From Octopus sinensis (Eukaryota), in assembly GCF_006345805.1 (NCBI RefSeq), contig NW_021833079.1, positions 62,001 through 126,000 on the forward strand: a DNA stretch of 64,000 nucleotides, written 5' to 3'. Below the pieces are notes generated by a model. The model searched no databases and was not told the origin of the DNA. It saw nothing but the letters and a program-made list of their open reading frames with translations. Below, in pieces: positions 1,630-58,269 of this stretch; position 1 is the first letter of the stretch; each line of letters starts with the position of its first letter. The position numbers and the translations under genes were made by a program.

Positions 1630-2608
1630 ATGTTTGTTTACCACATATTGTTATATTTAACATTTTTCTATCAAAATGGTAATTGATAAAATATACTTTT
1701 AGCCTCAGGTAGTGGTTCCAGAATGTTATGTAATAAAATAAAGTGTTATTTTAATCCCTCTAAAAATATGAATAAAAAGCAAGCTATTGAATTTTGCCAA
1801 AAATATAATATGAGCTTGCCACATATAAGAACCATTGAAGAAAATAGTTTTCTTCACAGTAAATATATTTTTGTTAGTTTAAGATTCGTTTGTGGTAAAA
1901 TACAACATTGACATGTGGATCGATTCAAAATCAAATGTTCATTTCTTCTTTATTTAAAATAGATGGAATATTCTAATTGGAAAGATGTTAGAGACAAAGA
2001 TACTTCCTGCACTATAATGAATGATTGTGGGAAATGGGAATCTGTCGACTGTAACATGAAAAGAGCAGCCGTCTGTTCTTCAAATAGTTCTGCCAATTTT
2101 TTTCATTTTAACTAGGAGATAGAGTTCGCTGTAACTGCGGTAGTCAACATTCTAATTATTGCTACATGTATTTCAACGAAAGTTCGACCTTAATAACAGC
2201 CCAGGGAAAATGTAAAAGTATTGGCGGGAAACTTCTTACAATAAAAAATCACCCTGAAAATAACTACATTTACGGTATTTTATGTCAGTTACAAATAGGG
2301 CAATTCATGGTGTGCAATGTACATAATATTATATTAAATATTATGAAGATAGGGAATTCTTTTTTGGAAGCTACAACAAAATCACAATTGGTTAAAATCT
2401 TCAATATTTATTGTAAGCTATACTATGCTTGGGGACGGTATGAGCCAAAAATGTTTAAATGTGTTGAATTGAAGGGGTGTGGATACTGGAAAACAATTCC
2501 ATGTACAGCTGAAAGAAATTATATATGCGAATTTAAAAGTTTATTGGTTTATATATGTCTTTAGTTGGGAACGTAACAAGTTGCCATACAATTAATAAGA
2601 AAACTTGA
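1630..2608 (+). CDS. Secreted protein with two C-type lectin domains, paralog 1 (multi-exon)
   Basis: Hydrophobic N-terminus, then introns 1679-1702 (24 nt), 25, 26, 2087-2115 (29 nt), 24, probable 39 and 27, and 2539-2564 (26 nt) that join the ORF pieces in frame. CTLD signatures: FC..Y..SLP, MWID, WESVDC, WGRYEP..CVEL..W...C..RNYICE. Confidence 0.85.
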
Positions 2609-4440: not shown

Positions 4441-4649
4441 TATTCTGCATGAAAAAAAACTGTTCGACCTTCTCCTCCCCCCCCCCACGACTTTAGGAGG
4501 GGTGGCCTTCCAATTTGTAATGATAACTTTTTTCTATAACGTTTATTATGAAATCGTATATTTTTTAATTTAATTTCAATTCATTATATTCATGAATTTT
4601 ATAATTGGAAAATGTCAAATTCGATGTGAAAAAGTGTCGGAAAAAAATA

Positions 4650-4960: not shown

Positions 4961-5629
4961 ATTGAAAACTATTTGCCATGGAAAATAAAAAAATATTACT
5001 CCATTCAAATTTCAGAAGCTTGTTTTTATCTACAACAAAAAATTCAAACCACTAGCAAAGGGAATGTAATTTAATATTAAAAATACTTCATCGGCAACTC
5101 AGGACTGACATACTAAGTTGCATCAATCGTGGACAAAGTTACAGAAACAATGGAACAGATTTTTAGTCAAAAAAAACTGGTCGAATTCGAATCGACTAAG
5201 TACGGTGAAATGGGCCTTATTGTCCGAAGAGTACTCAGAGTCTTTCCTCTTTTAAAGCGTGCAATGGTAAAATACTTTGAAAGGCCACCTTTAACTGCTC
5301 AAGTACCTCCTTGGATTTACATGAACATCAAAGAAAAATACCTTCCTTTAGATTTTCTTTCTTCAATCTTAGATTGTTTTTTTTGAACTATACTAACTTC
5401 TGCAGCTCTCCATAGAGAGCTAGGACATTCTCCTCGTTCTTGAACCTCAGGGTAAATTCTGATTTATCGTTGATCCTAAAATTTATTATCGACAAAAGCC
5501 TAGAGAAATTTTTACTAATGAAAGCCGATGAAACCAAAAATCAAATAAATTTTCATTAAAGTGAGATGATAGTAAATCAATAAATCATGAGATTAATATT
5601 TTTAAAATTATTATTATCAAATTATAAAA

Positions 5630-10263: not shown

Positions 10264-11354
10264 AAAATTTAATTAATCTAACTTTTAATTCATTGCTTTT
10301 GACATTATCACTTTCACAGTTTTCATAATAATTTAAAAATAATTTTATAAAATATATAATTAAAATACCCATGTCTGAATCTTCTTCATGTGGTAGTAAA
10401 TTTATAAATTATGATTAAGAATCGTTTAATTATGTTCTACGTCTTTGGAACCTTGGTCACTGTGACAGGAAAAAATGCAGCGGGGTCCGCCTTGTAAAAC
10501 TCGGCTTTGCCGAATTTATTCCTTTAAAAAAACGCTTTAATGGAATAGTCTTAACTCCAATGGCTACAAACGTGCTCTCATTCAGTGACAAGTTTTTAAT
10601 TTATGCAAAAATAACAGAGAAATAATAGAAAAATACGGAATATGTGCCATCGATTGTTCATGGAACAAAATTGATGACCTCAGTCGTTTAAAATTTAATT
10701 ATAAACACGGGCGTCTTCTCCCCTTTCTTGTGGCCGGAAATCCCACTCGCGGAGGCCAGGCCTGTACCCTCAGCTGCGTTGAAGCCTTTGCATCAGCTTT
10801 ATGTCTTATTGGTTGGAGGAAGGCTAAAATATTGTTTTAGGGGATTCACGCTCTGCTCGTTTAATCATGGACCCTTTTCCGTGGTCTGTCAATTTTTTTA
10901 ATATGAATGAAACTCTTTTATCAGCTTACTCTACGTGCAAGACGTCGGCTGAGTTGATTAATGTTCAAAATGAAATTATGAATAAAAAATTTGAATGTTT
11001 ATGAGTTTTTATTATTTTTAGATGACAAGGAGTCCAATATGCGTCAAAATAAATATTATGAACAGTCGCCTGTTGATTCGGATTCCTTAAGTGATTTTGA
11101 TTCATTAGAAATTTAAGTGTTTAATTTTATATTTTTACATTTATTTTTTTTCCTACAAAATTTTTATTCTTTAAATCAAAATTTTTTGGAATGATGTTTC
11201 ACATATTTTACCTGCCCTGCTGATAATGTAATCCAAAGTAGTTAATTTGATATTCTGGCTATAAATAGACACCTTACCATTGGGATTTTATTGAGATTGG
11301 AAGTAAAATAAAATCCAATTGAAATTTAATATTTTTGGATTTTTGGTTGAGCCA

Positions 11355-11590
11355 AAGGCACGGGATCAGAATCACTGATAAAGAAATAAATTCAGCCAGC
11401 AGCCTCATAATTGAAGCAAGTCGTTTTTATGAAGAAAGTATAGAAAATAGGGATAAGGAGCCTTGACTAATTTGGTGATGGATAATAAAGTAGTGGTGTT
11501 TGTTACTTCTTCCTCTAAAAGGAGAAAATTATTTTTCAGCAGATAACGAGCGGATAAAATTGTAATGATTAGTTAATTGATAACTTTTTA
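11355..11590 (+). mobile_element. 3' end of an R4-type subfamily
   Basis: Nucleotide match (inverted) to 58270-58510, e.g. CGGGATCAGAATCACTGAT and GAAGCAAGTC. Confidence 0.6.
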
Positions 11591-16103: not shown

Positions 16104-17063
16104 TCTAACTATTAATAGACACTTTAAAATACTAATAATATAACATTCATACTAACTTCATTAAAACATTATTGAAAACTAAATTTTTTAAATCAATACA
16201 AACAAAGAAATTTTGCCCCTTAAAAAATTGTATTTTTAACTAAAAAAAAGCAAATTTGGAATCAGAGATTGTTAAGAAGAGAATGGATTTTAACTTTTCT
16301 AATAAAAAAAATTGCACTATTATAGGATTTTAAAGAATATTTTCCTCGGGAACCAAAAAATAATATAAACTCAACCTTGTTTTTTTGGTTAAAAAGATCA
16401 TCTAAACACTCCAATTTCGGACAAAAGCTAACTTTTTAGTTTATTTTTTTATAAATCAGTTATTTCACTTTTTCCTTAAATGCTTTGATCTGACTCAGTA
16501 CTATGTTTTTCAATCTCATAATTTATTCATAATTTCATACTGGGCAGTTTTTCATAGATTAGTTACGATTTGGAGTTATAGTTTTTGTTACTTAACAATT
16601 TGATGTAATGTCTTAATACATCCATAAATCCTGCCTTCAATGTAATAAAGTGAACTCTAATTAACCTGAGGGGCCTAATTTGACCTGCGAGGGCTTAAAA
16701 ATGATCCGCAAACGAATTGTATAATAATAAAAAAATGGGCCCGTCTACAAAATGTTCCAACTAACATGACCGATGAGCAAATATATTATCTATTATTAAA
16801 AATTAAATAAAATAATTACACCCCTCGACAAAAAATTTGGTTATTCGATCTTTCCTGCTTTTATTCATTTAAAAACGAATAAATTTTGAAAAAATTGAAC
16901 CGTAAAATTAAGCTAGTATTTAGAGTTTGTGTTAGATCAATAATCTTTTCTGCTCAATGTATTTTTGAATTATTACCGACCCAAAAAAGAAAAATTGTGT
17001 ATAGAAAAAAATTTGAAATAAATATTACTTCAACTCAAATTTGGAAAAGGTAAATTGTGATGT

Positions 17064-20000
17064 TTTTTATTAAGAAAGAAACTAATTAACTAAGTAATTT
17101 TACTAACTAAGTCCAGAGCCTTCGAAGTGAGCAGAAGGCGGCACTCCACGCACCTCCTCCCCTTCTTCCTCCTCTTCTCTGGCACTGTAGACCTTCGAGA
17201 AGGTGCAGTCCAGCGCCTCTTGCTGACTAAACGTCAGGAAAGGGCTGGATCGGCGAGCATCAAACGAGACACTCTCCAGAGTCCTCTTAAAAACAGTTGA
17301 CTGTATATAAGCCTGTAGAGACTTATCTACATCCAACTGTTTTAAGTACCGCTTGTGGTATTTGGTGACCAGTCCATCCCATGTCATCACACACGGGATG
17401 ACATGGACTTTGCACTGGTGCATCAGTCCTAGCTCGTTTGCAAGGAGGTCATACTTCCTTTTTTTCTCCACTTCCACTATCTGCAAACGGTCTAAGCACG
17501 TGATGCCCACCTCCACGATAACAATCTCCCCGGTGACCTTATCGTGGACCACAATGTCGGGTCTGTTGTGCTGGACAACAATCGAGGTGCGTATGGGGGT
17601 ATCCACCTTAATGCACACCCTCGAGTTCTCACACACCGATTGAACTCGATGGGTTCGCAACTTTCTGGACCGCCTCAAGCCGTACTTATTGCAGAGCAAA
17701 AGATGGAGGGACCTCACCACCTCGTTATGCCTCCATGTGTAATCATGGTAAAGCATACTCCCGCACTTCGTGGCTAAATGGTCAACGGTCATTGCCTTAC
17801 TCTTACAGTGGTTACACTGTTTCCGTTGACCATTAAAAAAGTTTCTATCCTGCAAATATGAGAACAACCCTTCTGATCGGGGAGAGTTATTCCCATATTT
17901 CAGCCACGTAGATGACGACGATACGTCAATGTGCGGGTTGTCCAGGCTGCTAAAGAGAGTCTTGTGAAGGACTTTTAAGTTGATCTTTTTAATTAAAGAC
18001 TCCTTTTGAAGTTTGATCAACTCCTTCACATTAACTTGGGTAGCACCTAGACCATACTTAGCCGACACATAGCCTTTTATGGTCCCTAGGTGTGTACCAC
18101 GCGCTTTTTCAGCAGCAAGGATGGCAGCCTTCCTTTGGGATACACTCGACCCACTCCACAAGGTGTCGTGCATCTTAGTAAGAATTCGCTCACTTAAGTG
18201 TACGATGTTACTCAGTCCACGTCCTAGCTGCCCGCGAGACAAGTACAATCTCTCCTTATTGCTTGCCAACACGTGGACATGATTCTCTCGGAGTACTCTT
18301 CGGACAATAAGGTCCATTTCATCGTACTCACTCGGCTCGAATTCGATCAGGCCAACGTAGTAGTTTAGCAATGAGATGGCATACTCGTTCAAGGCATGAA
18401 ATAAGTTCCGTGCATTGAGCCGAGTCTTACATAACATTGCCGCCCTACTACGCACACCCTCCACTACACACTTTCTCGTTTCGGGTGTGATTAATGAGGC
18501 TGGACTCTCAACCACACCAAGATACTTATATCCTTGGTGTTCCTCCAAGACTTTGACTAGGTCACCGCACACAGGGGTGTTAGTCGCCGACTTGTCGTAG
18601 TTGAGCTCCAACCCCACGGCCTTCATGAAACCTTTCAGGACTTTACCCATTGAGTGGAGGATCTCTGAAGACCGAGCGAACAGCTTAATGTCGTCTATGA
18701 ACATGAGATGGTTGGTGCTAAAACACCCTCCTTCATGTTCGATCGACATTTGTTCGAATTGGGCAGTGAGGACTCTACTCAACGGTTCTAGGCAGAGGAC
18801 GAACAGCAGCGGAGACATGCTGTCGCCCTGTAATATGCCCCTCTCTAGTTTCACCTCGCCTATATCGCATTTGTTGTAATTTAGATGCACGTTCCACCTG
18901 TCCATCACAGTTGCAACAAATTTGATAAACCACATTGGCAACTTAAGCCTTCGCAGACACTCAACGAGGTAGGCATGATCAACCGAGTCATATGCCTTCT
19001 TCACATCCACCCACATTGACACTAGTGAGTTTCCGTGGGCTCTCGCGAGGCATTTGTTGATCAGTGCCTGCTCCTTAGCTCCCTGGCAATCCCGCCGAGT
19101 ACCTAACTGGTTCTCGGACAGAATCCCATTCACCTCCACGAAATTTCTGACCTCAGTAGCCACCACCTTAGTCATCAACTTGTACAGGTTGGGCATACAG
19201 GTTATCGGACGATAATCTGTCGGAGCGGAAGGGTTATCTACTTTAGGGATCAAATAAGTGACCCCAGTACATAACCACTCTGGAATCGAGCCAGGGTCTA
19301 GTGTAAACTGTTCGATTGCTCGACACATGCAATCATGGATAGGTTTGCAATTTTTAATAAAGAAATTATACACTTTATCGACCCCAGGTGTCTTCCAGTC
19401 AGAGAGACGGGTTACTGCTTCATCGAACTTCTTGCGGATGTCAGGGACACCACAAGACTCGGTCATCAAGGGAGCATCGGGTCCACAAAACGGAAACGAC
19501 ACACCCTTGCGAGGACGTGCTTTCCACATACTCCCCCATGTGTCAAGCATTTCGGCCTTTTGCTGGGTACCCTCCTTCGTCTCTCCGTGCAACCGACGAT
19601 AGAACGACCTGCGATTAAATTCAAACAGGTTGTTCTCCCGCCTGCGCTGACACCGAGACTCATGAGTTGAGAGCTTCTTCTGATAAACGAGAATCAGCTC
19701 CTCCCTCTCTGCCCGGACACGCCTCAACTCGTTGAGGTCCCATTTGGCAGCTCGTTCCCGACGAAGTAAAGTACGCACCAAGGGGGGAGTCTTGCCCTTG
19801 ACCCCATTGCTCACATTCAAAATGTGCCCAGTCAGCGCTTCCAGCTCGGCTTTCCTTGCGGCTACTTTTGCGGCAATGTTTTCTCTCCATCTACTCTTTG
19901 GGGCAGGCCTCTGAGTGATTTCATCATAGGTTGTCTGTGCCGAGTACAAATAAAGAGAAATCTCGTCCATTGTCTCCGGAGGCTCACGCACGATCGCGTA

Positions 20001-20568
20001 AGCTATGGCACGATTGATGCAACCCATCACGTCACTTCTGAGTTGCCACCGAGGTATCTTTCGGGTCACTCTGCGGTCCGCAAGGGGGACAACACGATTC
20101 GCAGAGATATGCCTACTAAATATCTCCTTAACCTGCAAGAGTAGCGATAACTCACTACTCTGGTGCTCGTGTTGTTCAGAACACGGGGGGCATCCTGACG
20201 GCGTAACCGCAGCGGCAGTCCTCCCCCGCGAGCCAGGAGGAGGGGTCTTGGCCAGCTTCTTCAGTGCATCTAACGATAGGTTCGAGCTAAAGCGTCGATT
20301 GAAACACTGAAGCAGGGTAGGCCACCCATTTCTGGGCATCCTGGAAGCTCTTCCCAACACTTGGGAAAGGGCGGATTTAACCCAGTCCTCCCGGGTCGTG
20401 CACTCGATCCCTTCTGCAATGGCAAAGACGATGTTCTTGCCATCGGACGTCTGTCTCTCCGATGCGGTTGTCCATCCTGCTCTAGGTATATTATTATTAA
20501 TAATATTGTTAGTTTCTTGTTGTCCAGGTAGAGCACACATCGAGATAGTAGCACGTTGCATAACAGAC
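17064..20568 (-). mobile_element. Full-length R4/Dong-type non-LTR retrotransposon
   Basis: 13-bp TSD TAAATTGTGATGT (17051-17063 and 20569-20581), AATAAA plus short A tail, single uninterrupted ORF. Confidence 0.93.
17103..20561 (-). CDS. RT-CCHC-RLE polyprotein, 1152 aa
   Basis: RT motifs YRPITC, KKAYDSV, GILQGDSMSPLLF, NHLMFIDDIKL, YKYLG; R4-like RLYLSRGQLGRGL; CNHC..HLATKC knuckle; PD..E..K endonuclease (RPDIVV..IVEVG..EKKRKY). Confidence 0.95.
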   Translation of the reverse strand: MQRATISMCALPGQQETNNIINNNIPRAGWTTASERQTSDGKNIVFAIAEGIECTTREDWVKSALSQVLGRASRMPRNGWPTLLQCFNRRFSSNLSLDALKKLAKTPPPGSRGRTAAAVTPSGCPPCSEQHEHQSSELSLLLQVKEIFSRHISANRVVPLADRRVTRKIPRWQLRSDVMGCINRAIAYAIVREPPETMDEISLYLYSAQTTYDEITQRPAPKSRWRENIAAKVAARKAELEALTGHILNVSNGVKGKTPPLVRTLLRRERAAKWDLNELRRVRAEREELILVYQKKLSTHESRCQRRRENNLFEFNRRSFYRRLHGETKEGTQQKAEMLDTWGSMWKARPRKGVSFPFCGPDAPLMTESCGVPDIRKKFDEAVTRLSDWKTPGVDKVYNFFIKNCKPIHDCMCRAIEQFTLDPGSIPEWLCTGVTYLIPKVDNPSAPTDYRPITCMPNLYKLMTKVVATEVRNFVEVNGILSENQLGTRRDCQGAKEQALINKCLARAHGNSLVSMWVDVKKAYDSVDHAYLVECLRRLKLPMWFIKFVATVMDRWNVHLNYNKCDIGEVKLERGILQGDSMSPLLFVLCLEPLSRVLTAQFEQMSIEHEGGCFSTNHLMFIDDIKLFARSSEILHSMGKVLKGFMKAVGLELNYDKSATNTPVCGDLVKVLEEHQGYKYLGVVESPASLITPETRKCVVEGVRSRAAMLCKTRLNARNLFHALNEYAISLLNYYVGLIEFEPSEYDEMDLIVRRVLRENHVHVLASNKERLYLSRGQLGRGLSNIVHLSERILTKMHDTLWSGSSVSQRKAAILAAEKARGTHLGTIKGYVSAKYGLGATQVNVKELIKLQKESLIKKINLKVLHKTLFSSLDNPHIDVSSSSTWLKYGNNSPRSEGLFSYLQDRNFFNGQRKQCNHCKSKAMTVDHLATKCGSMLYHDYTWRHNEVVRSLHLLLCNKYGLRRSRKLRTHRVQSVCENSRVCIKVDTPIRTSIVVQHNRPDIVVHDKVTGEIVIVEVGITCLDRLQIVEVEKKRKYDLLANELGLMHQCKVHVIPCVMTWDGLVTKYHKRYLKQLDVDKSLQAYIQSTVFKRTLESVSFDARRSSPFLTFSQQEALDCTFSKVYSAREEEEEGEEVRGVPPSAHFEGSGLS

Positions 20569-21159
20569 TAAATTGTGATGTAATAAGAAATTAGGGAAAG
20601 TCATGGTATGGGGTTGTTTTTCCTATCGTGGGGTATGCAATTTGGTATTTATAGCAAGACGCTTAATTCTGCAAAATATCAATCTATTTTGATCAATAAT
20701 TTGCCACATTCTGCACAAAAAATGAGGTTTGTTGACTATATTTTTCAACATGACAACGCTCTCAGCCATACATCAAAAATTATTATTCAATATTTTTGCG
20801 AAAAACATATTAAAAAAATTAGAATGGCCTTCGCAATCTACGAATTTAAAACCAATAGAGCATTTGTGGGCTTATATGAAGGTTCAAATTAGGCAAAGAA
20901 AAAATAAGAACATTCAGGCACTGAAGGAAAATATATTAAATATTTGGTATTCCTTTCTAACAAAAACACTTGAAAAATTAGTTGGGTCAATGAAAAAAAG
21001 GTGTTGCGAGATCTATTAGGCAAAAAGAGGTTATTTTACATATTAATTTGACAATAACCAAATTTTATGCCAATGAAAGTCGTTGTTTTTTCCAAATTTC
21101 TTAGACAAAATTTCAAAATTTAAATAATTAAATTAATTATTGTCGTATGTCATAGTTCG

Positions 21160-21270
21160 AATCCAAGCCCTAACTATATTTTGACTTTAAACCCTAACAT
21201 CAGCCTAACCTAATTTAAACCCTAACACAAACTCTTATTCTAATTCTAGCCCTAACTGTGGTTCAAATCT
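21160..21270 (+). repeat. Degenerate hexamer tract containing four CCCTAA
   Basis: 6-bp periodic AACCCT/AATTCT/AGCCCT units just inside the Ginger-like TIR. Confidence 0.5.
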
Positions 21271-22068
21271 TATTACAAATAAACAAGTGTCCCAAGACTA
21301 ATTTGACTCACTGTATGATCCCGACCTTAACACTAATCCTTTCCTGAACGCAAACTCCAACTGATTATGTTTTTTTGTATTCACGTTGTTATCAAAATCA
21401 GATTTGATAAAAACAGTATCGCCGATTTTTATATGCGTTTTTTAAAAATTTTTATTGGCGTTTTCTTTTACTTTTTTCGGTAATTTTTTAAATGCTCCGA
21501 CGTTTGATAATCTGATTCAATTTGAATTTCATCCTCCGATGAATACTCCGTTCTTTCGAATGATGATTCGATTTCTTTATTATCAAACAAAGAAACAGTA
21601 TTGAATCCCAAAGTTCCAAAAAATAATCTAAAAATAAAATTTACGAAGCAACCTAAAAGGTGATTTTTCGGTAGCACGATAAATAGTCGTGTTGTATTTA
21701 TAGACAGTATTCTTCAAAATATCAATCCAATATTGGATCGGATTGAATATTGTTTTTGCTAACCAACGCTTTAGCTTTGATTATATCGTTCTACCCTGCC
21801 TTGTGATTGAGGGTGTCTTGGTCTTCCATGAATCGTCTTTATCCCCCAATCACGTAATAAAAATGAAACTTCAGAGTTACAACAACTCTTTCCCTTATCC
21901 GTGGTAAGGTTTCAGGTGGCCCAACTGAGTTAAACAGTCTTCAAAAGAATTCTTTATTTTGAGAAGTTTTACTCATAGGGAAATGGACCATGCAAATTTT
22001 GACCTAACAATCAATTTATTAGAACCATTTATTTCTCTATATTAGAGCATATCTCCGAGGATCTATAC

Positions 22069-24127
22069 CAGTGATTCTCAAGTGCGGCCCCTGGGGCCGC
22101 ATGCGGCCCCTAGGATTTAATTTGCGGCCCCTAGGTTTTATAAATGTTTTATTTTTTAATTTAATATTTTTAAATTTTATGAATAAAAAAATGTCACGTT
22201 TTTATTTGTTGTTGTGATGTCTGAATTCTAAACGTTGTCGAAAACTTTCCGAGGAAAATAGGATTTTTCAACACATCTGGGAAGAAATATTTCATTATTG
22301 AGATCAATGGAAAGGCTCTTGCCTAATATGCCATTCTATTATTGCAACTCTAAAACGTATACAATCGAACGGCACTACCGTTTCCACTCTATTCTTTATG
22401 ACAAATTCACTGGTGTTTCTCGGACGAAAAAACTAAAACAAATGAAAGAAGATTATTTAAAACGATCATTTACTCTTTCAAAAGTGGCACATATTCGTCT
22501 AATATTAACCTGGCATCATACAAAATTAGTTACCTATTGGCTAAAAATATGAAGCCTTATTCTGATGGCGAATTATATAAAACGGCAATCGAAATATTTG
22601 CATCGGAATGTTGTTCGCCCGCTGTTTTCGATATTGCACACAAGTTACCTCTAAGTACGATACTGTTACTAGAGAGTCAGTGATATATCTGATAATCTGA
22701 TTAACGAACTTTTACAGTATGCAATTGTTTTTGTAATTTTTAGAATTTGTAAAGATTTTCAATATTATTCTTTTGCGCTTGATTGTTCCAAAGATATTCA
22801 GATATCGAACAATTAGTAGTGTTTATAAGGGGAGTAACATCTGACTTTCGAGTATACGAAGAATTTTTTTCATTGAATTCACTTCACGGAGAAACTAAAG
22901 GAACACAGATTTTTTCTCCAATTGTGAAATTAATTGAAGATTATCACTGGATCCAAAAAAATTAGTTTCATTTCAACTGATGGAGCCCCTTATATGATTG
23001 GCAGTAAAACTGGTTTTCGTGGACGTATGAATAAATGGAGGTGTGATAATAACTGGACTCCAGTATTATGGCATCATTGCATATTCATCAGGAAAACCTA
23101 ATTTCCAAAAATTTAAAATGGAAATGTTTCTGAAGTAGTGATAAAAATTGTCAATTGGATTCGGGCGAACGCCTTGAATCACCGAAAATTTAAAACATTT
23201 TTAACTGAAACCGATTCGGATTATGGCGATGTCCTTCTTTTCTCAGTAGTAAGATGGTTAAGCCGTAGCTCTTGTCTCAAAAGGTTAATTTCTTATATTT
23301 AGATTTTATCAACTTCTCCCTGAATTATTTTATTCACTGAAAATAAAGTGGACAATGCATTATTGAAAGACAATAGATGGGTAGCAGATTTAGCATTTTA
23401 TGTGGATCTATCGGTGCATCTGTCTGCCCTAAATGTCGAACTACAAGGGGAAAAAAGCTAAATTATCAAATTTATGGATATATAAATGCCTTCGTTAAGA
23501 AATTAATTTTATGGAAAGCGCAGATATCAAATAATGATTACACACATTTTCCTTATTTGTCAGAAAATTCCGAAAGTGGCTCAACTGATAAATATTTAAA
23601 AATAATTGAAGATTTAAATTTGCAATTTGATGCAAGATTTCAGGTTTTTAGTATTTAATTTAAGCTGACAGAGCTTTAAAGAAGGTGCAAATTCAATGAG
23701 ATTATTTGCATCTCCATTAATTATGAAAAGTGAGGAGGTTTCCGGGATTTACCAACTGGAATTGATTGATTTGCAAAATGATGTTGAACTGAAAAGTTTG
23801 TTCAACAACATTTCAATAATTGACTTTTATTCGAGAATTCCAGAGAACCGATTTCCGAATTTAGTCAATAATGCAAAGAAAAATTTAGCAATGTTTGGAT
23901 CAACATATGTCTGCGAATCGACATTTAGTAAACTCGTTCGAATTAAAACAAAGTTTCGCAGCAGATTGACTGATACTCATCTGAGTGATTTGTTACGTAC
24001 TTCAAAAGTAGAATTAAACCTAATTTTGATTATTTGGTTAATAAATAATTCTTAAAAATTATTGCGGCCCCCTGTAAATTTTTTTTTTAATTTGCGGCCC
24101 CTGAGCAAAAAAGCTTGAGAATCACTG
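22069..24127 (+). mobile_element. hAT transposon (Buster/SPIN/GTF2IRD2-like) with intron-containing transposase
   Basis: TIR CAGTGATTCTCAAG, 8-bp TSD ATCTATAC (22061-22068 / 24128-24135), subterminal GCGGCCCC repeats. Motifs FALD, STDGAP.MIG, HCI.HQENL, VRWLSR, FGSTYVCESTFSKL..IKTKFRSRLTD. Confidence 0.93.
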
Positions 24128-24203
24128 ATCTATACAATCCGCCACAAATCTTTCGAATTTATGTGAAACGGTAATCATTTAAATATCTTCGCATGTCTTT
24201 AGA

Positions 24204-24631
24204 CAGTGATTCTCAAGCTTTTTTATATGTGCCACTTTTGAAAGTAAATGATCGTTTTAAATATCTTCTTTCATTTGTTTTTATTTTTTTCGTCCGAGAA
24301 ACACCAGTGAATTTGTCATAAAGAATAGAGTGGAACGTTAGTGCCGTTCGATTGTATACGTTTTTAGAGTTGCAATAATAGAATGGCATATTAGGCAAAG
24401 AGCCTTTCCATTGATCTCAATAATGAAATATTTTTCTTCCCAGATGTGTTGAAAAATCCTATTTTCTCGGAAAGTTTTCGACAACGTTTAGAATCAGACA
24501 TCACAACAACAAATAAAAAACGTGACATTTTTTTATTCATAAAATTTAAAAATATTAAATTAAAAAATAAAACATTTATAAAACCTAGGGGCCGCAAATT
24601 AAATCCTAGGGGCCGCACTTGAGAATCACTG
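24204..24631 (-). mobile_element. Non-autonomous 428-bp deletion derivative of the adjacent hAT
   Basis: Same TIRs; left ~400 bp of the 22069 element joined to its last ~20 bp; TSD CTTTAGA(C) at 24197-24203 / 24632-24639. Confidence 0.9.
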
Positions 24632-25399
24632 CTTTAGACTGTTGAAATGGTTGCAAGAATCACAAGTTGATATAAAATGGCGAATAACTTTTTAATTTAT
24701 ACCAATATATTTTTGGGAAATTAAATGGCACATCTTGGAAACTCAAGGATGTCCGATAGAATGTTCTTTAGTTAAAATTGAATTGATTTCGGATTCTTGA
24801 AAGGAACAGACAACAGTACGAAAGTTTCCATTAAGTGCAAGAATTAATTCTCCATTTATAAGTTTTAAATTCTGACACTTTCGGCGTAGCGTACGCTTTT
24901 GATTTTCATTGAAATCATTAGGATACTCATTATATTCGAAGTAGTTCATTATGTTCTTTAATTCATAGGCCGTATTAATGCTGAACGAAGAAGGCATTAC
25001 AAAAATCAAATTTAAAATTTAAATTAAAAAAATAATTAAAAAATTAAAAACAGCTTTATTGACTCAAAATATATCAGATTTATCAGTTAAAAAAAGTATT
25101 CAAAAATATTATAATTAGTATTTTCAAGTGATCAGTCGTTCTCATCAGCCCGGACACTATCAACAACCCGGACGCTATGACATACGACAATTATTTTCAA
25201 TTTTATCAGATTTTAAAATATATCGGAAGAAAACATTAAATCATTCTTTGTATAAATTCAGTAAGTTGAAGATTCACCAATATTTATGTCTAGGGGTGTA
25301 TGTGTGGTGAATTTGAATTTCGAATTGCCCCAAAAGAATTAAAGATCTTCAAACCCATACGTTTAATTCTGATTGAACTCATAAATATCTCTTTATTGT

Positions 25400-28300
25400 T
25401 TAACCTATATTCTTAATATGCTTCAAAAAGTTGCTGTCCAAAAATTTTATAACACCAAGCGACACTATGAAATTCGTCGTTACGAAAAATTTAAAAAGCT
25501 TACAAGAGAATCTCGCTTAAAGGAAATTAGGAGTCTCGAAAAAAATTACCGAAAGCAAACAACATTTTTTAAATAATTTGTGTTGTAAAATAGATGATAC
25601 TACACGTACAAATTACGAAATTTGGGGAACAAATGAAACCAATTTCAAAAACAGAATTTATAAAAGAATGCTTTCCGAAGTAGCTGAAAATCTATTCCCG
25701 AAAGGTTTTTTTCAAATACAGGAAAATGTCATAACTTTTCGTGAGGAAATATGATGGTTTATATTTCCGAAATACTATTAATATCTCAAAATGAGACATT
25801 TTGGTAGACATAAAATCACATCTAAATGACTTTTTTTTTTTTAATTTCAAAACCTTTGTTATGAAAGCAAGAAAGAAATTAAAGATAGCTAAGTTAATTA
25901 AAGGCCTTACGAGACACCCGACCAGCCTCGCGAATGGCGAAGCCGTTCCCTCGGATCACAGCAATCGACAGACGTTCCAGGAGCCAAGAAAACTCTCTTG
26001 GATCGTGACTAGTCCTTGAAATCCGTCGACCGAGCGAGCGAAGGAAGCGGAGTGTCTTGGGACCGAAGATCCCGGAGGACTCCACGGCAATTGGAGTAAA
26101 GAGCAGCGAGTTGGAGAGGTGGCCGTACTTGAGAATCTTTCGCTCCTCGGCCTGCCTGGAAGCGTGCCCAGGATTGGCGGCGGACAGAGCGAGATTTCCC
26201 AGCGAGAACGTGTCCGAGCAGGTAGAATCCCAAATAAGGGATTTCCCCTGCTCGTAGGGGAAGGTGGACATGCCGTCAGGGCGTTTGCCATCCCCTCTAT
26301 CCAATCCAACAGGTTCAAGGATTGACGGGATGCCTGCTGAAGCGAGGGCTCTCTGTATGACTGAGTTGAGTTCACTGTGACGGGGGGCACGACCGGCACT
26401 CCGCCGGCAAGCGAGGGGATGCAAACCGTACTCGTCAACAGTTCCCCCACAACGGCATTTGTGCGTCTGGCAGATTTTCAGCCCGACACGGAGGGAGATT
26501 GCAATTCTTAGGCATTCCTTGTCCAACAGGTTCCCGATGGAAGGGAGAGGGAGAGCCTTTAACCAGACACCGCTGCCTTCACAGCGACCTGCACGGAGGC
26601 AAGCGACACGGTGTTGATTGGAGACAGGAAGCAGGCCTTCGAAGATTGCCTGACAAGAGATTTCGTCCCATTGACGCTGTGAAAATTGAGAATTGGGCAG
26701 CTTCGAACCAAACCGAGCCTCCCACCGACCACGGGGCTGCAGAGTAAACTTCAGACAATTTCCGTTCGGGGAGGTTTCTAAGAACGATGTCTGAGAGAGT
26801 ACGAGAAGCGTGATGAGCGGATAGGAATGCCGGGAGGGCAAGATCGGAATAGGATCTCAAGCCAAGGCCGCCCCAGCGCACAGGCAGGGATGCCTGAGTC
26901 CAGCCTGGATCGTCGAAAGCCAGATTGCAAAGAGAGCTCGTACCGAGCCTGAGGATATTGTCAAGGTCGGAAAGAAGGTCGTCTCTTTGAAAGCAGGGTG
27001 CGCATCTTAGGGTGTAAAGGATCTTAGGGACGGAAAAGTGGTTTCGGAGGAGGAAAAGAGCCACATGAGGCTCTATGACTTTAAGCTTGTCGATCATTTT
27101 GGATAAGTGGGAAATTTTTCCAGCGAGTGAGCATTCGAGGGCAGAAGGCCCCATAGGGGCACCGAGGATCGTAAGATTTGATTTGTCCGTAATCCGGACA
27201 TCTGAGAGAATGCCTCGGCACGTGGAAATTGAAACAGTGAAGTCACTCGGATTTAAGGCAATGTTCACGATTTCGGATTTATCGGCGTTTATAGATAGGC
27301 CGATGTCCGAGAGGGAAGGGAGGATAGAACGAAGGTCGTCAAAAACAGCATCGGGGGGACCACAAATGGTTGCGTCATCCAGATACCATATGTTAACTGG
27401 GGATCGAACAGAGTGAGCGATACTGTTAACGCCCAAGGCAAAAAGGACAGGACCCAGGGGATCTCCCTGTTGGACCCCGGTGGCCGAAGAAATAGGTATA
27501 TCGTTGAACATAAGGATACTTGAGGAAGCATAAGAGAGATGCACAAGGGGATAGGCGAAAGGGACTAATTCACGACAGCACTCCAGAAGGTGGTCCCGCC
27601 TGATGGAATTGAATGCGTTGGAAACGTCCAATTTGACCATAATAAACTGCTCAAATGATTCAGTTAAGTCACGAATTGAGTGGACAGCAGCTTCGCAGCC
27701 GTTAGGAACGCCGACCCCGAGTTGGACAGGCAGAAACTTCGAGGACAAGCAGGGAACAATGGCTCGACACAGAAGTTTAGCGGAGAGCCTCCGGAAAATA
27801 TTGCCCACGGCGATGGGCCTCACGCCGTTGTCCTTTTTCCAAGGGCAGTAAGGTTGGCGGAAAAGAAAATATCACGAGCAAAATCGGGGAGGGAACCGGA
27901 GATGAAGCGGTTGCACAGGTTGGTGATTGAGCGTAGGAGTTTTCGACCAGCTTCGGCGGTAGTGGGAGACGTCAGGTCTTTCAGATGACCTGGTCTCAGA
28001 CAATCTACACCACCACTGCTTCCAGGTGAAAAGTCCCTCAGGGCTTTCAGTACAAGAGTTTCCGAGACAGCAAAAGGATTGAGAGCGAGGAGGGTGTCAG
28101 GGGACGGCTGAGGCCTGAAGTCGTTTGGCTGAGGGGGATGTTTTTCCCTGAGGAATTAAAACAGCAGGGGTCGTGGGCAAAAGGGGACTTGTCGAGGCAA
28201 CCAGCCTAACTGCACCACGAACGTCCCGTCCAAGAGTTTACTATTAATCTTTCTGTTGAGGTAATCGACGTCATTCGCGTGAGAGGACACATTATGGGAT

Positions 28301-29350
28301 GGTGAACCAGAGGGAAATTTGGAGCTAGCGAGGTGGTCCCGCAGCCAGCGGATGGAAAAAAAGTTCTTATCATACAAGGCCAATTCTTGTTTGACGGTTG
28401 TAGCCAGCGAGATGGAGGAGGTTTTCACACGGGCTCTTAATGGGGCAAAACCGAGACCGAAAGAGGCGAAGCAAAACAGCTTAAGCCAATCGGAATGGCA
28501 TCAGATGCCAAAGCCTTATCGATTGCGGCGGACAAGGAGGAGGCTGCAAAGATACGCGCAGCTTTTGGGATTCTGGATGGGATTTTCCGGAGACGGCGGA
28601 AGAGCTTGATAGATTTGAGAACTTCCTCGGCAGACGGAGATGTTGCGAGTGGCGCTTTTTCGGGGAGTTCTTGCGGGCTGGAACACTGAACCGGCTGGCA
28701 AGTGCGGCAGGAAGGACAGTCCCAAATTAAGAGAGAGGCAGAAACGCGCCTGGAAAGACGCACGCAAGAAAGGTGGAAGAATCTGTCGCAACTAGAACAG
28801 ACTCTCCCTTTCTAAATGACTTAAACTTGAAACTGCAAGGAAGTAATAAATTAATAAACCAAATGTATACCGAAATAACTACTTTTGAAAATAAATTTGA
28901 GTTGTAGGAATTACAGTTACAAAAAGGAAATATGACGTATTTTGTGAATTTTCTTTCTACGAATCCGACTGATGGCCCGGAATATACGAATTAAGATCAG
29001 AATTTTCATCACGTTTTATGGATTTAAGAGTAAAATACTTATATATAATTTTTTAGGTTCATAAAAATCTTTTCAACATTTTCCAATCTCATTTGATGTT
29101 GAAACTGAGACAGTACCAGGTTGTTATAAAATGGAATTACTTTAAAGTCAATGCGACACTAAACTTAAATCAAAATATTTTTCTGAATTGGTAATTTTGA
29201 GTTTCTAAAAAATTTTGTATGTGTTAAAAAATATCACAATTAACCGACAATGCTAATATTTGGAAACACATTTTTATATCAACAATTATTCTCCACTATG
29301 AATAATGTAAAAAATTGTCTGAGAACGAAAATTACCGATTTACATTTTAA
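25400..29350 (+). pseudogene. Second hAT (SPIN-like) transposase relic, split by CRE copy A1
   Basis: Removing the CRE and one TSD restores LVDIKSHLNDLNLKLQGSNKLINQMY; also YNTKRHYE and QLFSTMNNVKNCLRTKITDLHL. Confidence 0.7.
25833..28810 (-). mobile_element. CRE-clade non-LTR retrotransposon, family A copy 1 (5'-truncated inside the PHD finger)
   Basis: 12-bp TSD TCTAAATGACTT (25821-25832 / 28811-28822) and poly(A). RT motifs RPIAVG, LDVSNAFNS, VQQGDPLGP, WYLDD; zinc knuckle C.C...HPLAC; RLE KRPDG...WD..AVE. Confidence 0.92.
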
Positions 29351-29715
29351 CGATATATTACGTTTAGGACTAGTCAGATTAATAAATAAAATAAATTCAC
29401 TTCCTTGTAATCATTTTTAACTAATAAACTCGCAAGCTTTACCTGGAACGGTTAGTTCCTTGCAAAAAAGATAGTTTGTATGTTACCGCTCACGATTGTA
29501 AACGAATCAAGATCCTCTGTCTCAGCCAAGTGATTCTCGTATATTCTTATTTTTCCAACCGATAAGGATCTTTTCACGTTTGGCCCGGATCGCATACAAA
29601 AATAAAATTTTGCCACGCGAAGACAAACATCCTGCCGATCCCTGGGCTAGACCGTGGAAACGGGAAACATCTGACGGGTCTAGTTAATCCTCGTTCAAGA
29701 TGAGACAATTATTTG

Positions 29716-38707: not shown

Positions 38708-39946
38708 TTATTTATTATCGAGATTATATAAATATGCTTTCAAATTGAGATTTATAGAACTGGCAACGGGTTTCATTTGGTCGTAAGTGGCAAGACATTT
38801 AAACTTGGGAGAGTCAAGTCCTCCTGTCGTACTCAGCAGTCGAAGACACACCAAAGTAGACAACTACGAGTCATTTAAACCACAACAACATGACTATTAA
38901 CATCATATTCCAACATGTTTGACATGTGTTCTTTAACCACGTGATGTATAGCACACAGTCTGTCCAATTCAAACAACTTAGGTCCTGTCGTTTGAGTTGT
39001 GGTCTAAACATTCTTAAATAATCATCACAGTCTTTGGCATAGCCTTCTTTGACGTCTTCTTAATAAAATACTGCACATCAGTCGAAATTGGATTGTAGGA
39101 TGCAATGTAGGCACAAATAAGGACAAGTTTAGTATTCTCTGGAAGATTCACCAAGTCATTGTTAAGAGACTCACAATCAGTCTTTAGAAAAATAGATTTT
39201 TGAGCCATAAGTAGAGAAGGTTCGAGAATTTTCCACATTGAATGAGCAGTCACATTTTTGGGAAGAAGATTGTAATATTTGAGACCAATTTGAATGATTT
39301 CGTGGAGATTAAACGTCCACACGTTCATAACACTGACAAGAATGTCTACAAATAATTCAGTTAAAGAGGAAGGAGGCAGGTGAGCCTCTAAAATTGTCTT
39401 GATTTCATCTGAAATGTATACATAGTACATACTAATTGTGTAATGAGGCAAGTGTATTGTCAGTCCTGACATATCACATGGATTTTCACTAATATACACA
39501 CAAGAGACGTCTATTTGAGGACTATAATCGTTTAATTTGCTCAGAATTGACAATATTTGAGGCGACAGCTTATCCGCTGAGTCAAAAATCTGCAACCTTA
39601 CATGACAGGGGACACCAATGTAAAATGTTGTCCTGTCTTTCCTGCTATGCTAATAAAGTCAGAGACTGTTTCCCCGGAATCGTTGCATGTCCCACAAAGA
39701 ACATTCCAAAATATAGACTCGCTGTAGCATTGGGCACAATCCAGATATACTGAATTGAGGGGATTGTCTTTTATCAGGTAGGCCACTGTACATGACTTTC
39801 CACAGCCTTGAGGACCGACAATATTTATGGATTTGTAGGGAGTGTATTTACTCTATGACATAGCAAAAATTTATATTTACAGAATTTAGTATTTTCCTTA
39901 ATAACTCTAATTTCTCACATCTGCACGTCGAGATAAACGGAGGCAT
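38708..39946 (-). CDS. ORC5: Origin recognition complex subunit 5
   Basis: Start MPPFISTCR, Walker A GPQGCGKS, LICAYIASYNPISTDVQYF, GPKLFELDRL.AI, LSTLV.LRLL..DSPKFKC, AYLY. Confidence 0.9.
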
Positions 39947-46985: not shown

Positions 46986-49529
46986 CACCCCTCGTCACCG
47001 AAAACCGGACAAGCTATTTTTGATGATTTTATTAATTAAATATGAAAAATCAAAAACTTACGCTTAAATCAAAAACTTACGCTAAAACGATCATCGAGAA
47101 CGGACATGGCTTTTCCAACGCATATCAATAGCCATCTTGCGTGGGAATTGCCATTCCATCTTGTCCTCCTAAACATTTTGACTTTAATTTAAACACTTGT
47201 GTTTCAAAAAAAATATCTTTACTTAATAATATTAATTATGTTATTATAGAACTTATATTTAAAGCAGAATTTCAATTTATTTATGAGATGTAAAACCGGA
47301 CAAAAATAAAAACAAGTCATTTAGTAGTTAATATGCCCACCATTTGCACTGAAAATTTTGTAACATCTATTTTTCATAGACATTGCTAGTTTTTCAATAA
47401 TTCTGGTGATATATTATGTCGCGAGCGCGAGCCGCACATATCGACTTTTTTAAAGCTATTAAATGGAACAAAAAATATCAAATAACGTTAGTACCATTGA
47501 GATAATATTCCAATATATATATATATAAAATCTATCTATATAATTTATACGGCGTACCAGAATCATACAACATTTTAATACCGTTGCACGCTTAGTTTCG
47601 TTTTGTTGTAACAATGTCACAATCGAACCAAAGATGCTTTATTCAAGATCAATTTGAATATCAGGAATTAAAGAAAGTCCTGTCTGGGAGATTCCACAGA
47701 CAGATGACAGATTCCGGAGACGAAGGCTTATTAAGAAAGCCGAATCTTTTGTGTTTATTCAGGGACACCTTTATCTGAAAGATGGAAACATTAACAAATT
47801 AGTGATTTCGTTGGACGATACTAAACAAATTGGACGATTATATGATTTTTTTGTTGGCTAAAAATTTTTTTGTATTTAAAAAAATAAAAACATGTCTAAT
47901 TATTTTTTGTCTAACTATTCGGTGATTAGATAACTATTGGATTTATAAGACGTCAGCCATATACTCATACATGTCAAGCTATTTTAACGATTTTCCGAAA
48001 TTTTCTATCATTTAAAATATTTATCAAATTATCAGAATTTCCATTAAATTTATTTGGCAGTGTATTTTTTTTAATTTATAAAATTTAAAGAAAACTTTAT
48101 AAAACAAGTTTTTACATATTTTAGTGTGACATAAATATTTTGTTACCTTTCCAAATCTTTCGGACTCCAGCGCCCGTAAAAATCAGCGCTTCGATGGCTT
48201 TTTTTCTTTTTGAAAAAAAACTAAGTCCATTTTAAATATAATTAAATGTGCGCGTCGCGCTCGCGTGCTCGCTGCGCTCGCGACATATTATTCTATATTT
48301 CTGTTAATTTGTCCTTTAGTTCATTTTTGTTTTTGACTACATTTTTTGATAATTCTCTCTTCATTTCTGCCCATAGATGTTCTATGGGCGTTTAAATCCG
48401 GTGACTGAGCCAGCCATTGAAGTAAAATAATGTTTTTTTAATATAATCTTGTACTATTTTAGATTTATGGCAAAGTGCATTATTCTGTTATAAAATTAAT
48501 TAGTCTATCCCGAATTTTTTGGCACATTCAAATATATTATTGGATAAAATATTAGTATATTTTGCGCTATTTAGGATTCCATTAATAAAAACAAGATTAC
48601 AGACTACTTTATATGAGAAACTGCTTCAGACCATTACTTTTCCACCAACGAATTTTACAGTTGGGATAATATTGCATTTTTTGTATGCAGAACCATTTTC
48701 TCTATACACTATTTGATGCTTATTGGTATTAAAAATATCAAAAGACCATTCATCAATAAAAATTACCGACTTCCATGTCTCGTCGGAAATGCTTAAAAAT
48801 GATTTCGTAATTTTACGTCTTAAAATTATGTTTTTTGTGGATAAAAGAGGTTTTCTTTTAGCAGCTCGGACATATAATCCTTTCTTATTTAAATTTCGAA
48901 ATACTATTCTTGTTGAAATTTTTTTTGAACATAGTTTTAATTTTGATAGTAAGAGTTTTGCACTTTTATTAGAAGTATTATTTGATAGTTCTACTAAAAT
49001 CAAAATTTCTTCCTCTGTCGATATTTTTTTTTCAGTTCCCGGATGTCTGTTAATTGATCCAGTTTTTTTGAATTTCTGAATCACATCTGATACAGTTGAT
49101 TTTGAGACTCCTATACTTGCAGGAATCATTCGATAAGTCACATTATGATTATAAAATGCAATAATTTGTCCTTTCAGGAAATCTAAAAGGTGACTTCTTC
49201 TTTAACTATACATTTTTAGCTTCTTTTCAACGACTTTTAGATCTATAAAAGTTTTGTCCGGTTTTACATGTCATAATTTTTTTTTTTAAATTTCAAATCA
49301 ATGTTAAAACAAATTAATCAGAAATTAATCGGCCAGCAAGCCGGATGGAACAGCTGTTCCCATAATTAAATTGAAATTCTGCTTTAAATATTAGTTCTAT
49401 AATAGCATAATTAATAATTAATATACAATTATTATTAAGTAAAAATATTAAGCATAAGTTTTTGATTTTTCGTATTTAATTAATAAAATCATAAAAAATG
49501 GCTTGTCCGGTTTTCGGTGACGAGGGGTG
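46986..49529 (-). mobile_element. Tc1 element (IR/DR type), decayed, interrupted by a Ginger-like insert
   Basis: ~80-bp TIR CACCCCTCGTCACCGAAAACCGGACAAG.. flanked by TA; inner AAAACCGGACAA repeats at 47281-47305 and 49251-49276; transposase ORF 48626-49141 (RKPLLS, IFIDE, TVKF.GGKVMV) continues to ANGGHINY* near 47330. Confidence 0.92.
47417..48285 (+). mobile_element. Non-autonomous Ginger-like element, 869 bp
   Basis: 12-bp TIR TGTCGCGAGCGC and 5-bp TSD TATTA (47412-47416 / 48286-48290). Truncated ORF from 47614 (RRRRLIKKAESFVFIQGHLYL) resembles the N-terminus of the 24997 ORF. Excision restores Tc1 NNISPELL. Confidence 0.85.
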
Positions 49530-57859: not shown

Positions 57860-58269
57860 GGTATATAAATCAGACTGGTTACCGCGAAAAAAGATAAGAT
57901 AGCTATTCTAAACTAGCATAATTTAACGATTGAACATTAATTAAATAATCGATTGAGTGGCAAGTGGTTTTAATAATAATAATAAACCGATTAATTTTAA
58001 TTCATTAGAACATTGTGAATAGATTCGCCTTTTCCAATTTAACCGCTTTTTAATTCTTTCTACTCGGTTAGGCCAAAAATTTACCGAAAAACAAGAAATT
58101 CATTAATTAGTAACGGTTTCGAATATATAAATGATTTATTACGGTATTTAAATTATTCTAGCAGTTATGTCTATTCTTAGAAACACGAACTTAATGATTT
58201 TTAACTGATCGAAGCAAATTTAAAGATTATTTAAGCTAATCGTTTGTCTATTCTACCATTTATTTTATT

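Follow-up and report, generated by a model that had tools for sequence, protein, structure and literature searches.

The 64,000-nt stretch of DNA analyzed here (the window), which is filed under Octopus sinensis, contains transposase genes whose reading frames are interrupted by short segments beginning with GT and ending with AG. This raises the questions of whether these segments are introns, what kind of genome they belong to, and how they came to lie within mobile genes. We consider it likely that the window derives from a host with ultra-short introns, and that it holds dead, nested transposons carrying six ordinary U2-type introns of the host class, gained within these elements. The original prediction had proposed six GT-AG segments of 19–28 nt in three superfamilies of DNA transposon. 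The coordinates and ends of all six were confirmed, and hAT, Tc1, and Ginger-like elements all carry them.

The segment of the Tc1-like element, previously given as a reconstruction of 27 nt, is real, and is split in two by a LINE with a 13-bp TSD. The features are as follows:

16960–17049, plus strand: Tc1-like transposase fragment, upstream exon (translation ends ...LKFGKG; aligns to SB100X and the Tc1 in locus L001)
17050–17063, plus strand: 5′ part of the Tc1 intron, GTAAATTGTGATGT (17051–17063 is also a copy of the LINE TSD)
17064–20568, minus strand: non-LTR retrotransposon (LINE), inserted inside the Tc1 intron
20582–20594, plus strand: 3′ part of the Tc1 intron, AATAAGAAATTAG
20595–21019, plus strand: Tc1-like downstream exon (KVMVWGCF ... 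DDE_3), carrying two or more frameshifts

The TSD TAAATTGTGATGT is present at 17051–17063 and 20569–20581, and joining GTAAATTGTGATGT to AATAAGAAATTAG gives an intron of 27 nt in all. The LINE ORF (17103–20561, 1152 aa, containing RVT_1) is intact and intronless, in keeping with the earlier statement that the retrotransposon lacks such segments; an exact-sequence look-up of this ORF gave no match. The Tc1 fragment matched PF13358 (DDE_3) at 33.8 bits (cut-off 28.6). As this match begins after the junction, and does not discriminate between spliced and unspliced forms, the junction was aligned to Sleeping Beauty SB100X 5CR4 and to the intact Tc1 in L001; the SB100X alignment (E=2e-26) is gapless across the intron junction. 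A second, intronless Tc1 in the window (~48290–49200, minus strand) was considered as a segment-free copy and rejected, since it has no DNA similarity to the first copy; it therefore represents another family and is uninformative on private insertion.

The Ginger-like element carries a single segment:

21135–25195, minus strand: Ginger-like DNA transposon of the integrase type, with 21-nt inverted repeats at its ends
21628–21652, minus strand: Ginger-like intron, 25 nt, GT-AG (between SPFR and LFFG), placed by alignment of the junction to P0244/P0245

The inverted repeats contain TGTCGTATGTCATAG, and the candidate 4-bp TSD reads AATT against TATT. This element is interrupted by a hAT, hAT-A, and by a hAT MITE, and exact removal of both inserts leaves 1559 bp with several stops and frameshifts. 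The decayed copy matched Integrase_H2C2 at 30.9 bits (cut-off 25.5) and rve at 28.2 bits, below the cut-off of 32.6; its homologues carry both rve and H2C2.

The remaining four segments lie in two hAT elements:

22069–24127, plus strand: hAT-A element (GTF2IRD2/ZBED5-like hAT), TIR CAGTGATTCTCAAG, 8-bp TSD ATCTATAC
22717–22743, plus strand: hAT-A intron 1, 27 nt, phase 2, frame-preserving, no stop
23284–23302, plus strand: hAT-A intron 2, 19 nt, phase 2 (between CLKR and FYQLLPE)
23644–23671, plus strand: hAT-A intron 3, 28 nt, phase 0 (between DARFQ and SFKEG)
24204–24631, minus strand: MITE derived from hAT-A by internal deletion, matching its 5′ end at 96.5% identity, TSD CTTTAGAC
25894–28790, minus strand: decayed GC-rich non-LTR retrotransposon (RVT_1), which truncates hAT-B (approximate boundaries)
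28790–29400, plus strand: hAT-B, a second, divergent hAT, 3′ fragment (approximate boundaries)
29030–29056, plus strand: hAT-B intron, 27 nt, phase 0 (between RFMDLR and VHKNLF)

The superfamily marks of hAT-A comprise TIRs, the 8-bp TSD (copies of ATCTATAC at 22061–22068 and 24128–24135), and a C-terminal hAT dimerisation domain (PF05699, E=1e-8), and its homologues have FAM200/ZBED5 RNase-like domains. We aligned hAT-A to 19 homologues and hAT-B to the same set. Against these homologues, the three segments are the sole insertions in hAT-A beyond a few bases. All other differences in length or frame are 1-nt indels or point stops, with about 12 further 1-nt frame corrections needed and one extra stop.

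When the segments are removed, each of the six junctions aligns gaplessly to intronless homologues, in line with the earlier observation that their removal restores family-typical motifs. Among random 17–30-nt segments of the window, only 0.2–0.3% have GT at the start and AG at the end, so the GT-AG ends of all six are not due to chance. The six are AT-rich, with a median length of 27 nt. Five contain a stop in the frame of the upstream exon, the exception being hAT-A intron 1, which has a length of 3n and is stop-free. These stops had been held responsible for the broken appearance of the genes, but the ORFs are also broken by other lesions: in the Tc1, Ginger-like, and hAT-B copies, truncation or interruption is accompanied by stops and frameshifts. 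Because every carrier copy is inactivated by such lesions, the introns in the window have no present function. One decayed copy each represents the Tc1, Ginger-like, and hAT-B introns, and a blastn search of the window and of four related loci (65 kb) found no further copies of these elements. No spliced full-length product was present among the protein matches, and an Rfam scan of the window gave no match.

Two host genes in the same window served as a yardstick:

38708–39946, minus strand: host ORC5 gene, with four GT-AG introns (17–28 nt)
56634–57859, minus strand: host ZnT (SLC30A2-like) gene, with seven GT-AG introns of 23–27 nt and a spliced ORF of 350 aa

The ORC5 introns occupy 39853–39880 (28 nt), 39590–39615 (26 nt), 39004–39028 (25 nt), and 38864–38880 (17 nt). 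Across both genes, the 11 introns measure 17–28 nt (median 25), and complete ORFs result once they are taken out. The transposon introns, at 19–28 nt, fall within this range. A GTA start was found in 8 of 11 host introns versus three of the six transposon introns in the window (four of nine when those of L001, described below, are counted), and on these small numbers the transposon 5′ splice sites look weaker than those of the host. Since ZnT and ORC5 carry introns of 17–28 nt, the host is an ultra-short-intron animal, most likely a dicyemid, a parasite of octopuses. Among animals, introns below 30 nt with reduced “GTa...AG” signals are reported for dicyemids and myxobolids only (PMC13644364; PMC6736024). 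The best matches of ZnT lie in bilaterians, mostly spiralians; the best named ones are flatworms, molluscs, and annelids at ~40–45% identity, with no cnidarian, and the database yielded nothing near-identical. GC and repeat content fit D. japonicum (PMC6736024).

The strongest support comes from a related hAT on L001, on contigs filed under Octopus sinensis, with a protein 50% identical to that of hAT-A. It contains three segments of 30, 25, and 27 nt, at L001 positions 4498–4527, 5074–5098, and 5442–5468 and again with GT/AG ends, at the same codons and in the same phases as hAT-A introns 1, 2, and 3, respectively. Position and phase are thus conserved between these diverged copies, though the intron sequences differ, and the flanking exons are 40–77% identical over 30 nt. 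In both lineages, the length of intron 1 is a multiple of three and it contains no stop. The spliced ORF of the L001 element is intact (587 aa), and the element has a perfect 8-bp TSD. Four copies were found, 99.2–99.9% identical to one another; intron 1 is identical in all four, and introns 2 and 3 are identical in both full-length copies. The same contig set includes Rho GTPase and ZIP genes (L005) with introns of 23–27 nt. Because these contigs’ own genes carry such introns, the “Octopus sinensis” contigs bearing the related hAT are probably dicyemid contamination, and transfer of the hAT from parasite to host was rejected on the same evidence. RefSeq models under this species name cover the first two exons of the young hAT, reading through intron 1 and stopping inside intron 2. 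The concern that such elements would be mis-annotated as dead therefore holds for this hAT but not within the window, where the copies are dead for other reasons.

Transposase genes with introns are known in DNA transposons including the Drosophila P element, maize Ac, C. elegans Tc1, and Minos. Host-type introns in transposase genes are an already known phenomenon, to which the present elements add further members. As in our elements, the transposase ORF of these systems is interrupted by GT-AG introns of host-matching size and signals; there, the introns are spliced by the host and retention leads to truncated products. The introns described here differ in being 19–30 nt long, under the usual animal minimum, and in having intronless nearest relatives. 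There is a likeness in form to the host-gene introns of dicyemids (Lu et al. 2019, PMC6736024; Zverkov et al. 2019, PMC6543705; Hadjez et al. 2026, PMC13644364), which share the length class, minimal “GT(a)...AG” signals, and AT-richness. Those introns, however, lie at anciently conserved positions and have shrunk, whereas the transposon introns have no equivalent in related elements and appear to be recent acquisitions. Neither dicyemid genome paper mentions transposases (“transpos” has 0 occurrences). Introner-type elements (Huff, Zilberman & Roy 2016, as cited in PMC9942856) likewise tie DNA transposons to intron gain. As presented in PMC9942856, though, introners are transposons turned host-gene introns, while the introns here sit within the transposon’s own gene and are much too short to be mobile themselves.

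Elements fitted to the minimal-intron class of their host could have reached that state by gain or by shrinkage. The host-like form proposed in the original prediction stands, and its two routes can be narrowed towards gain by comparing intron positions with those of homologous transposases, as the closest outgroups are contiguous ORFs. The nearest hAT relative (P0003) has 1806 nt for 601 aa, and the nearest Ginger-like relative (P0244) 1356 nt for 451 aa. Full length is also seen in other hAT homologues called as ORFs on 2–3-kb contigs. The GTF2IRD2/ZBED5-like (FAM200) hATs of tunicates, vertebrates, and other animals have the same domain order as hAT-A and the L001 element, which are 50–53% identical to the tunicate-type hAT group, and the same CAG(T/G)G..TTCTCAAG-type TIRs and 8-bp TSD. 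Yet FAM200-type hATs are single uninterrupted ORFs, whereas the two apparently dicyemid lineages have three introns. Genomes of this kind also contain other hAT and Tc1 families, and these are without introns at the sites in question. As the nearest relatives are contiguous and these other families lack the introns, de novo gain inside ultra-short-intron genomes is most probably the explanation, by parsimony among relatives that are only ~40–50% identical. The identities compared, 40–53%, also leave room for a closer, unsampled donor with introns, and intron-bearing transposases are common, as the P element, Ac, Tc1, and Minos illustrate. The introns might, then, be old, inherited from intron-bearing ancestral transposons and shrunk to host size, just as the host’s own conserved introns did shrink (PMC13644364). 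We regard this as unlikely, given the contiguous hAT and Ginger-like relatives and the other hAT and Tc1 families without introns at these sites. The hAT-B intron, moreover, sits 3 codons further 3′ than hAT-A intron 3, suggesting separate events.

Less probable again, and unsupported, is that the introns form a regulatory gate, as the original prediction had suggested, with intron retention giving shortened proteins or repressors in the manner of P-element IVS3, or that the elements seed host introns, akin to the intron reservoirs of that prediction. Retention of any of the five stop-containing introns would truncate the protein, and the product of hAT intron 2 retention would be without the dimerisation domain; inefficient splicing of very short introns in microsporidia is cited in PMC13644364. 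Against such a gate is the 3n, stop-free hAT intron 1 of both lineages, and neither of the two host genes examined (ORC5 and ZnT) has a transposon-like intron.

Finally, we judge it very improbable that the segments are not introns but GT...AG stretches arising by chance, or small insertions private to single copies of pseudogenes in decay. In favor of this reading, every window copy is dead with many other lesions, AT-rich DNA often offers a GT...AG pair of suitable length near a frameshift, and three of the six segments rest on one copy. Against it, gapless alignment on either side fixes boundaries whose random base rate is given above, the remaining hAT-A lesions are all 1-nt indels or point stops, and the three hAT-A sites recur, with other lengths and sequences, in a relative that is intact apart from them and was active recently.

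Returning to intron gain within a host of ultra-short introns, we infer that the segments are spliced. Transposase genes depend on the host for transcription and splicing, so introns in DNA transposons are tolerable only where the host spliceosome removes them; retrotransposons lose theirs via the RNA copy. In the hAT-A lineage, gain would predate the split of two families that are now 50% identical. More tentatively, DNA transposons invading an ultra-short-intron genome may gain introns repeatedly, with three in one hAT and independent gains in a second hAT, in Tc1, and in the Ginger-like element; this is plausible, but we stop short of favoring it. An insert of 20–30 nt with “GT(a)...AG” would suffice for splicing, making repeated gain possible, and such introns might be selected if intron-bearing transcripts are better expressed.

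These elements offer a clean case for the study of intron origin, in which introns appear in mobile genes that have intronless relatives elsewhere, and the setting is one of only two animal lineages known for introns of this size. In genomes with introns below 30 nt, transposon annotation that relies on ORFs will leave active transposases split or truncated. If repeated gain is true, transposon families would provide natural reporters, open to dating, of how an animal acquires introns de novo. Genome-wide transposon consensus sequences combined with RNA data could yield a measurable rate and a mechanism of intron gain.

The window has a GC content of 30-35%, broken by GC-rich blocks that are non-LTR retrotransposons with RVT_1, and its 16.8-29.4 kb region is a transposon nest with these elements:

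Tc1-like fragment, interrupted by a LINE at 17064-20568
17064-20568, minus strand: LINE with an intact 1152-aa ORF (17103-20561) and a perfect 13-bp TSD
21135-21155 and 25175-25195: 21-nt inverted repeats bounding a Ginger-like integrase element
22069-24127: hAT-A, inside the Ginger-like element, with the 8-bp TSD ATCTATAC
24204-24631: deleted hAT-A derivative (MITE) of 428 bp, the second insert in the Ginger-like element, with TSD CTTTAGAC
~28790-29400: hAT-B, a second, divergent hAT fragment, cut off by another decayed LINE

The LINE (GC ~49%, short A tail) lies within the Tc1 intron and looks like a recent insertion. Exact excision of hAT-A and the MITE from the Ginger-like element restored homology over the joins (FERFVADCIDPRRY against YDRYVIDCIDLRHY in the protein match P0244). 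Elsewhere in the window, an ORF at 2166-2564 (plus strand) encodes a C-type lectin domain (Pfam E=1e-6) and is probably a host gene exon.

All six segments that the original prediction had read as tiny introns in these transposase genes were present with GT...AG ends, a combination found in merely 0.2-0.3% of random 17-30-nt segments from this window. The Tc1 segment measures 27 nt once the LINE insertion is closed (GTAAATTGTGATGT + AATAAGAAATTAG). A stop in the upstream frame was likewise recovered in five of the six, the exception being hAT-A intron 1, the length of which is a multiple of three. To reconstruct hAT-A, the three segments were removed and 1-nt frameshifts corrected, and the resulting protein matched GTF2IRD2/ZBED5-like hAT transposases at ~50% identity. 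In a 20-sequence alignment, all three hAT-A junctions were free of gaps and had conserved residues on either side, as in RWLSRSSCLKR/FYQLLPE against RWLSRASCLKRFYELLPE. The three segments were the only multi-base insertions in hAT-A relative to its homologues; the remaining defects were 1-nt indels or point stops. Junctions in the other three elements were likewise gapless with homologues (slash, junction):

hAT-B: EFSSRFMDLR/VHKNLFNIF; homologue P0009, EFSSRFVDFRQHAGEFKLF
Ginger-like: ATEKSPFR/LFFGTLGFN; homologue P0244, ATGNSPFMLFFGQPGYN
Tc1: LKFGKG/KVMVWGCF; homologues SB100X (5CR4), VKHGGGSIMLWGCF, and an intact Tc1 in contig L001

From these sequence comparisons, we infer that the six segments are spliced. 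That retrotransposons carry no introns is expected.

Comparison with a related hAT followed from P0046, a protein filed under Octopus sinensis in which 10 extra residues stand exactly at the intron 1 site and the sequence terminates exactly at the intron 2 site. Its locus, on contig L001, holds a hAT flanked by a perfect 8-bp TSD, with GT-AG segments of 30, 25, and 27 nt (27, 19, and 28 nt in the window), located at the same three codons in phases 2, 2, and 0. The introns differ from those of hAT-A in sequence and length, while flanking 30-nt exon stretches are 40-77% identical. Removal of the three segments yields an intact 587-aa transposase with 50% identity to the window reconstruction and one gap across 559 aa. 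Four copies of this hAT, two of them full length, occur on four contigs at 99.2-99.9% identity; as judged from these sequences, it is a young family whose protein requires removal of three introns. The three hAT-A introns would be older than the divergence of the two families, which today share 50% identity. Intron 1 is a stop-free multiple of three in both lineages (window 22717-22743, 27 nt; L001 4498-4527, 30 nt), and its retention would add 9-10 residues with no truncation; the RefSeq model reads through it.

Host genes in the window carry introns of similar size:

39946-38708, minus strand: ORC5, a complete single ORF after removal of four GT-AG segments (28, 26, 25, and 17 nt)
57859-56634, minus strand: ZnT/SLC30A2-like gene, a 350-aa ORF after removal of seven 23-27-nt segments

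These 11 host introns span 17-28 nt (median 25, GC 27%), and the transposon introns 19-28 nt (median 27, GC 20%). A GTA start is found in 8/11 host introns versus 3/6 window transposon introns (4/9 with L001 added), which might mean weaker splicing of the latter, though numbers are small. The spliced ZnT protein is ~45% identical to bilaterian ZnT2, and its named best matches are from flatworms, molluscs, and annelids. The only animals reported to have introns below 30 nt are dicyemids and myxobolid myxozoans, in which the signals are pared down to 'GTa...AG' (PMC13644364), and the Dicyema japonicum genome has 36.7% GC, 49% repeats, and numerous LINE copies (PMC6736024). Taken together, these data make a dicyemid the most likely host of the window.

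The related hATs came from four unplaced WGS contigs of GCA_006345805.1, namely L001 (VCDQ01002078.1), L004 (VCDQ01013161.1), L005 (VCDQ01011168.1), and L006 (VCDQ01006159.1). Two cellular genes were found on L005:

~3980-3300, minus strand: Rho-family GTPase, with three GT-AG introns (26, 25, and 23 nt) in canonical positions (VVVGDS/SVGKT, YPKT/DIFIICF, ESK/WIPE)
1100-2030: ZIP transporter, with one GT-AG segment of 27 nt and an in-frame GC-AG segment of 24 nt that contains stops

Removal of the latter segment (1738-1761, two stops) is needed for ZIP13-type spacing; as it starts with GC, not GT, the choice is between a GC-AG ultra-short intron and an error in the assembly. With introns of 23-27 nt in their cellular genes, the contigs look like dicyemid contamination of the octopus assembly, which is the simplest reading. 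An unclassified repeat common to the window (58264-58693, 11346-11558) and L004 (907-1324), at 78-82% nucleotide identity, suggests related source genomes. An octopus transposon or a host-parasite transfer was set aside, given the tiny introns of the L005 Rho GTPase and ZIP genes.

The original prediction had allowed for shrinkage or de novo gain. The nearest hAT outgroup, P0003 (two occurrences in one assembly), is a contiguous 1806-nt ORF, and the nearest Ginger-like relative, P0244, a contiguous 1356-nt ORF; shrinkage is therefore less favored. Further families were available for comparison:

L004 12996-12045 and 9822-8965 (both minus strand), L005 12147-12899: other hAT families in dicyemid-type contigs, one split by the young hAT insertion
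Window 48290-49200, minus strand: second Tc1-like copy, almost full length and intronless, bearing four point stops as well as local frameshifts

Neither the hAT at L004 9822-8965 nor that at L005 12147-12899 had an intron where introns 2 and 3 lie in hAT-A, so intron carriage is lineage-specific. The Tc1 intron was absent from the intact L001 Tc1 and from the decayed 48.3-49.2 kb copy, which has no DNA similarity to the fragment that carries the intron and is thus of another family. Counted from the hAT-A intron 3 site (23644-23671; after RFQ), the hAT-B intron (29030-29056; after RFMDLR) is displaced by 3 codons in the 3' direction. Both are phase 0 and fall within one short linker, and the two could be near-coincident independent gains or reflect intron sliding. 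Overall, the contiguous outgroups, intronless families, and 3-codon offset lead parsimony to favor several de novo gains, as a reading of distant relatives.

The suggestion that such elements are mis-annotated as dead did not hold in the window, where the copies are dead spliced or unspliced. hAT-A needs ~12 frame corrections and has one extra stop, and its lesions recur in the neighboring MITE, so the lineage was already non-autonomous. Both TIRs persist in the MITE around an internal deletion, and its identity to the 5' end of hAT-A is 96.5%, frameshifts included, indicating mobilisation in trans of a lineage that was already defective. Of the others, Tc1 survives as an interrupted fragment, the Ginger-like copy contains several stops plus two insertions, and hAT-B is truncated. 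Mis-annotation does apply to the young dicyemid hAT: its RefSeq proteins, named 'GTF2IRD2-like' (XP_029657494, XP_029655752, XP_029656231, XP_029655454, and XP_029654578), come from read-through models and are truncated. The other ideas of the original prediction, that splicing could gate transposase expression and that DNA transposons could act as intron reservoirs, are conjectures.

Host-type introns in transposase genes are well known from the P element, Ac, Tc1, and Minos, a feature shared by the elements described here. Ultra-short introns in dicyemid host genes have also been published (PMC6736024, PMC6543705, PMC13644364), and the two dicyemid genome papers nowhere mention transposases. 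A literature text search for tiny introns in transposases yielded ciliate genome papers only, and those consulted describe no such case. Our analysis adds proof of the hAT introns by comparison between elements, evidence in favor of de novo gain, and a concrete case of mis-annotation and contamination.
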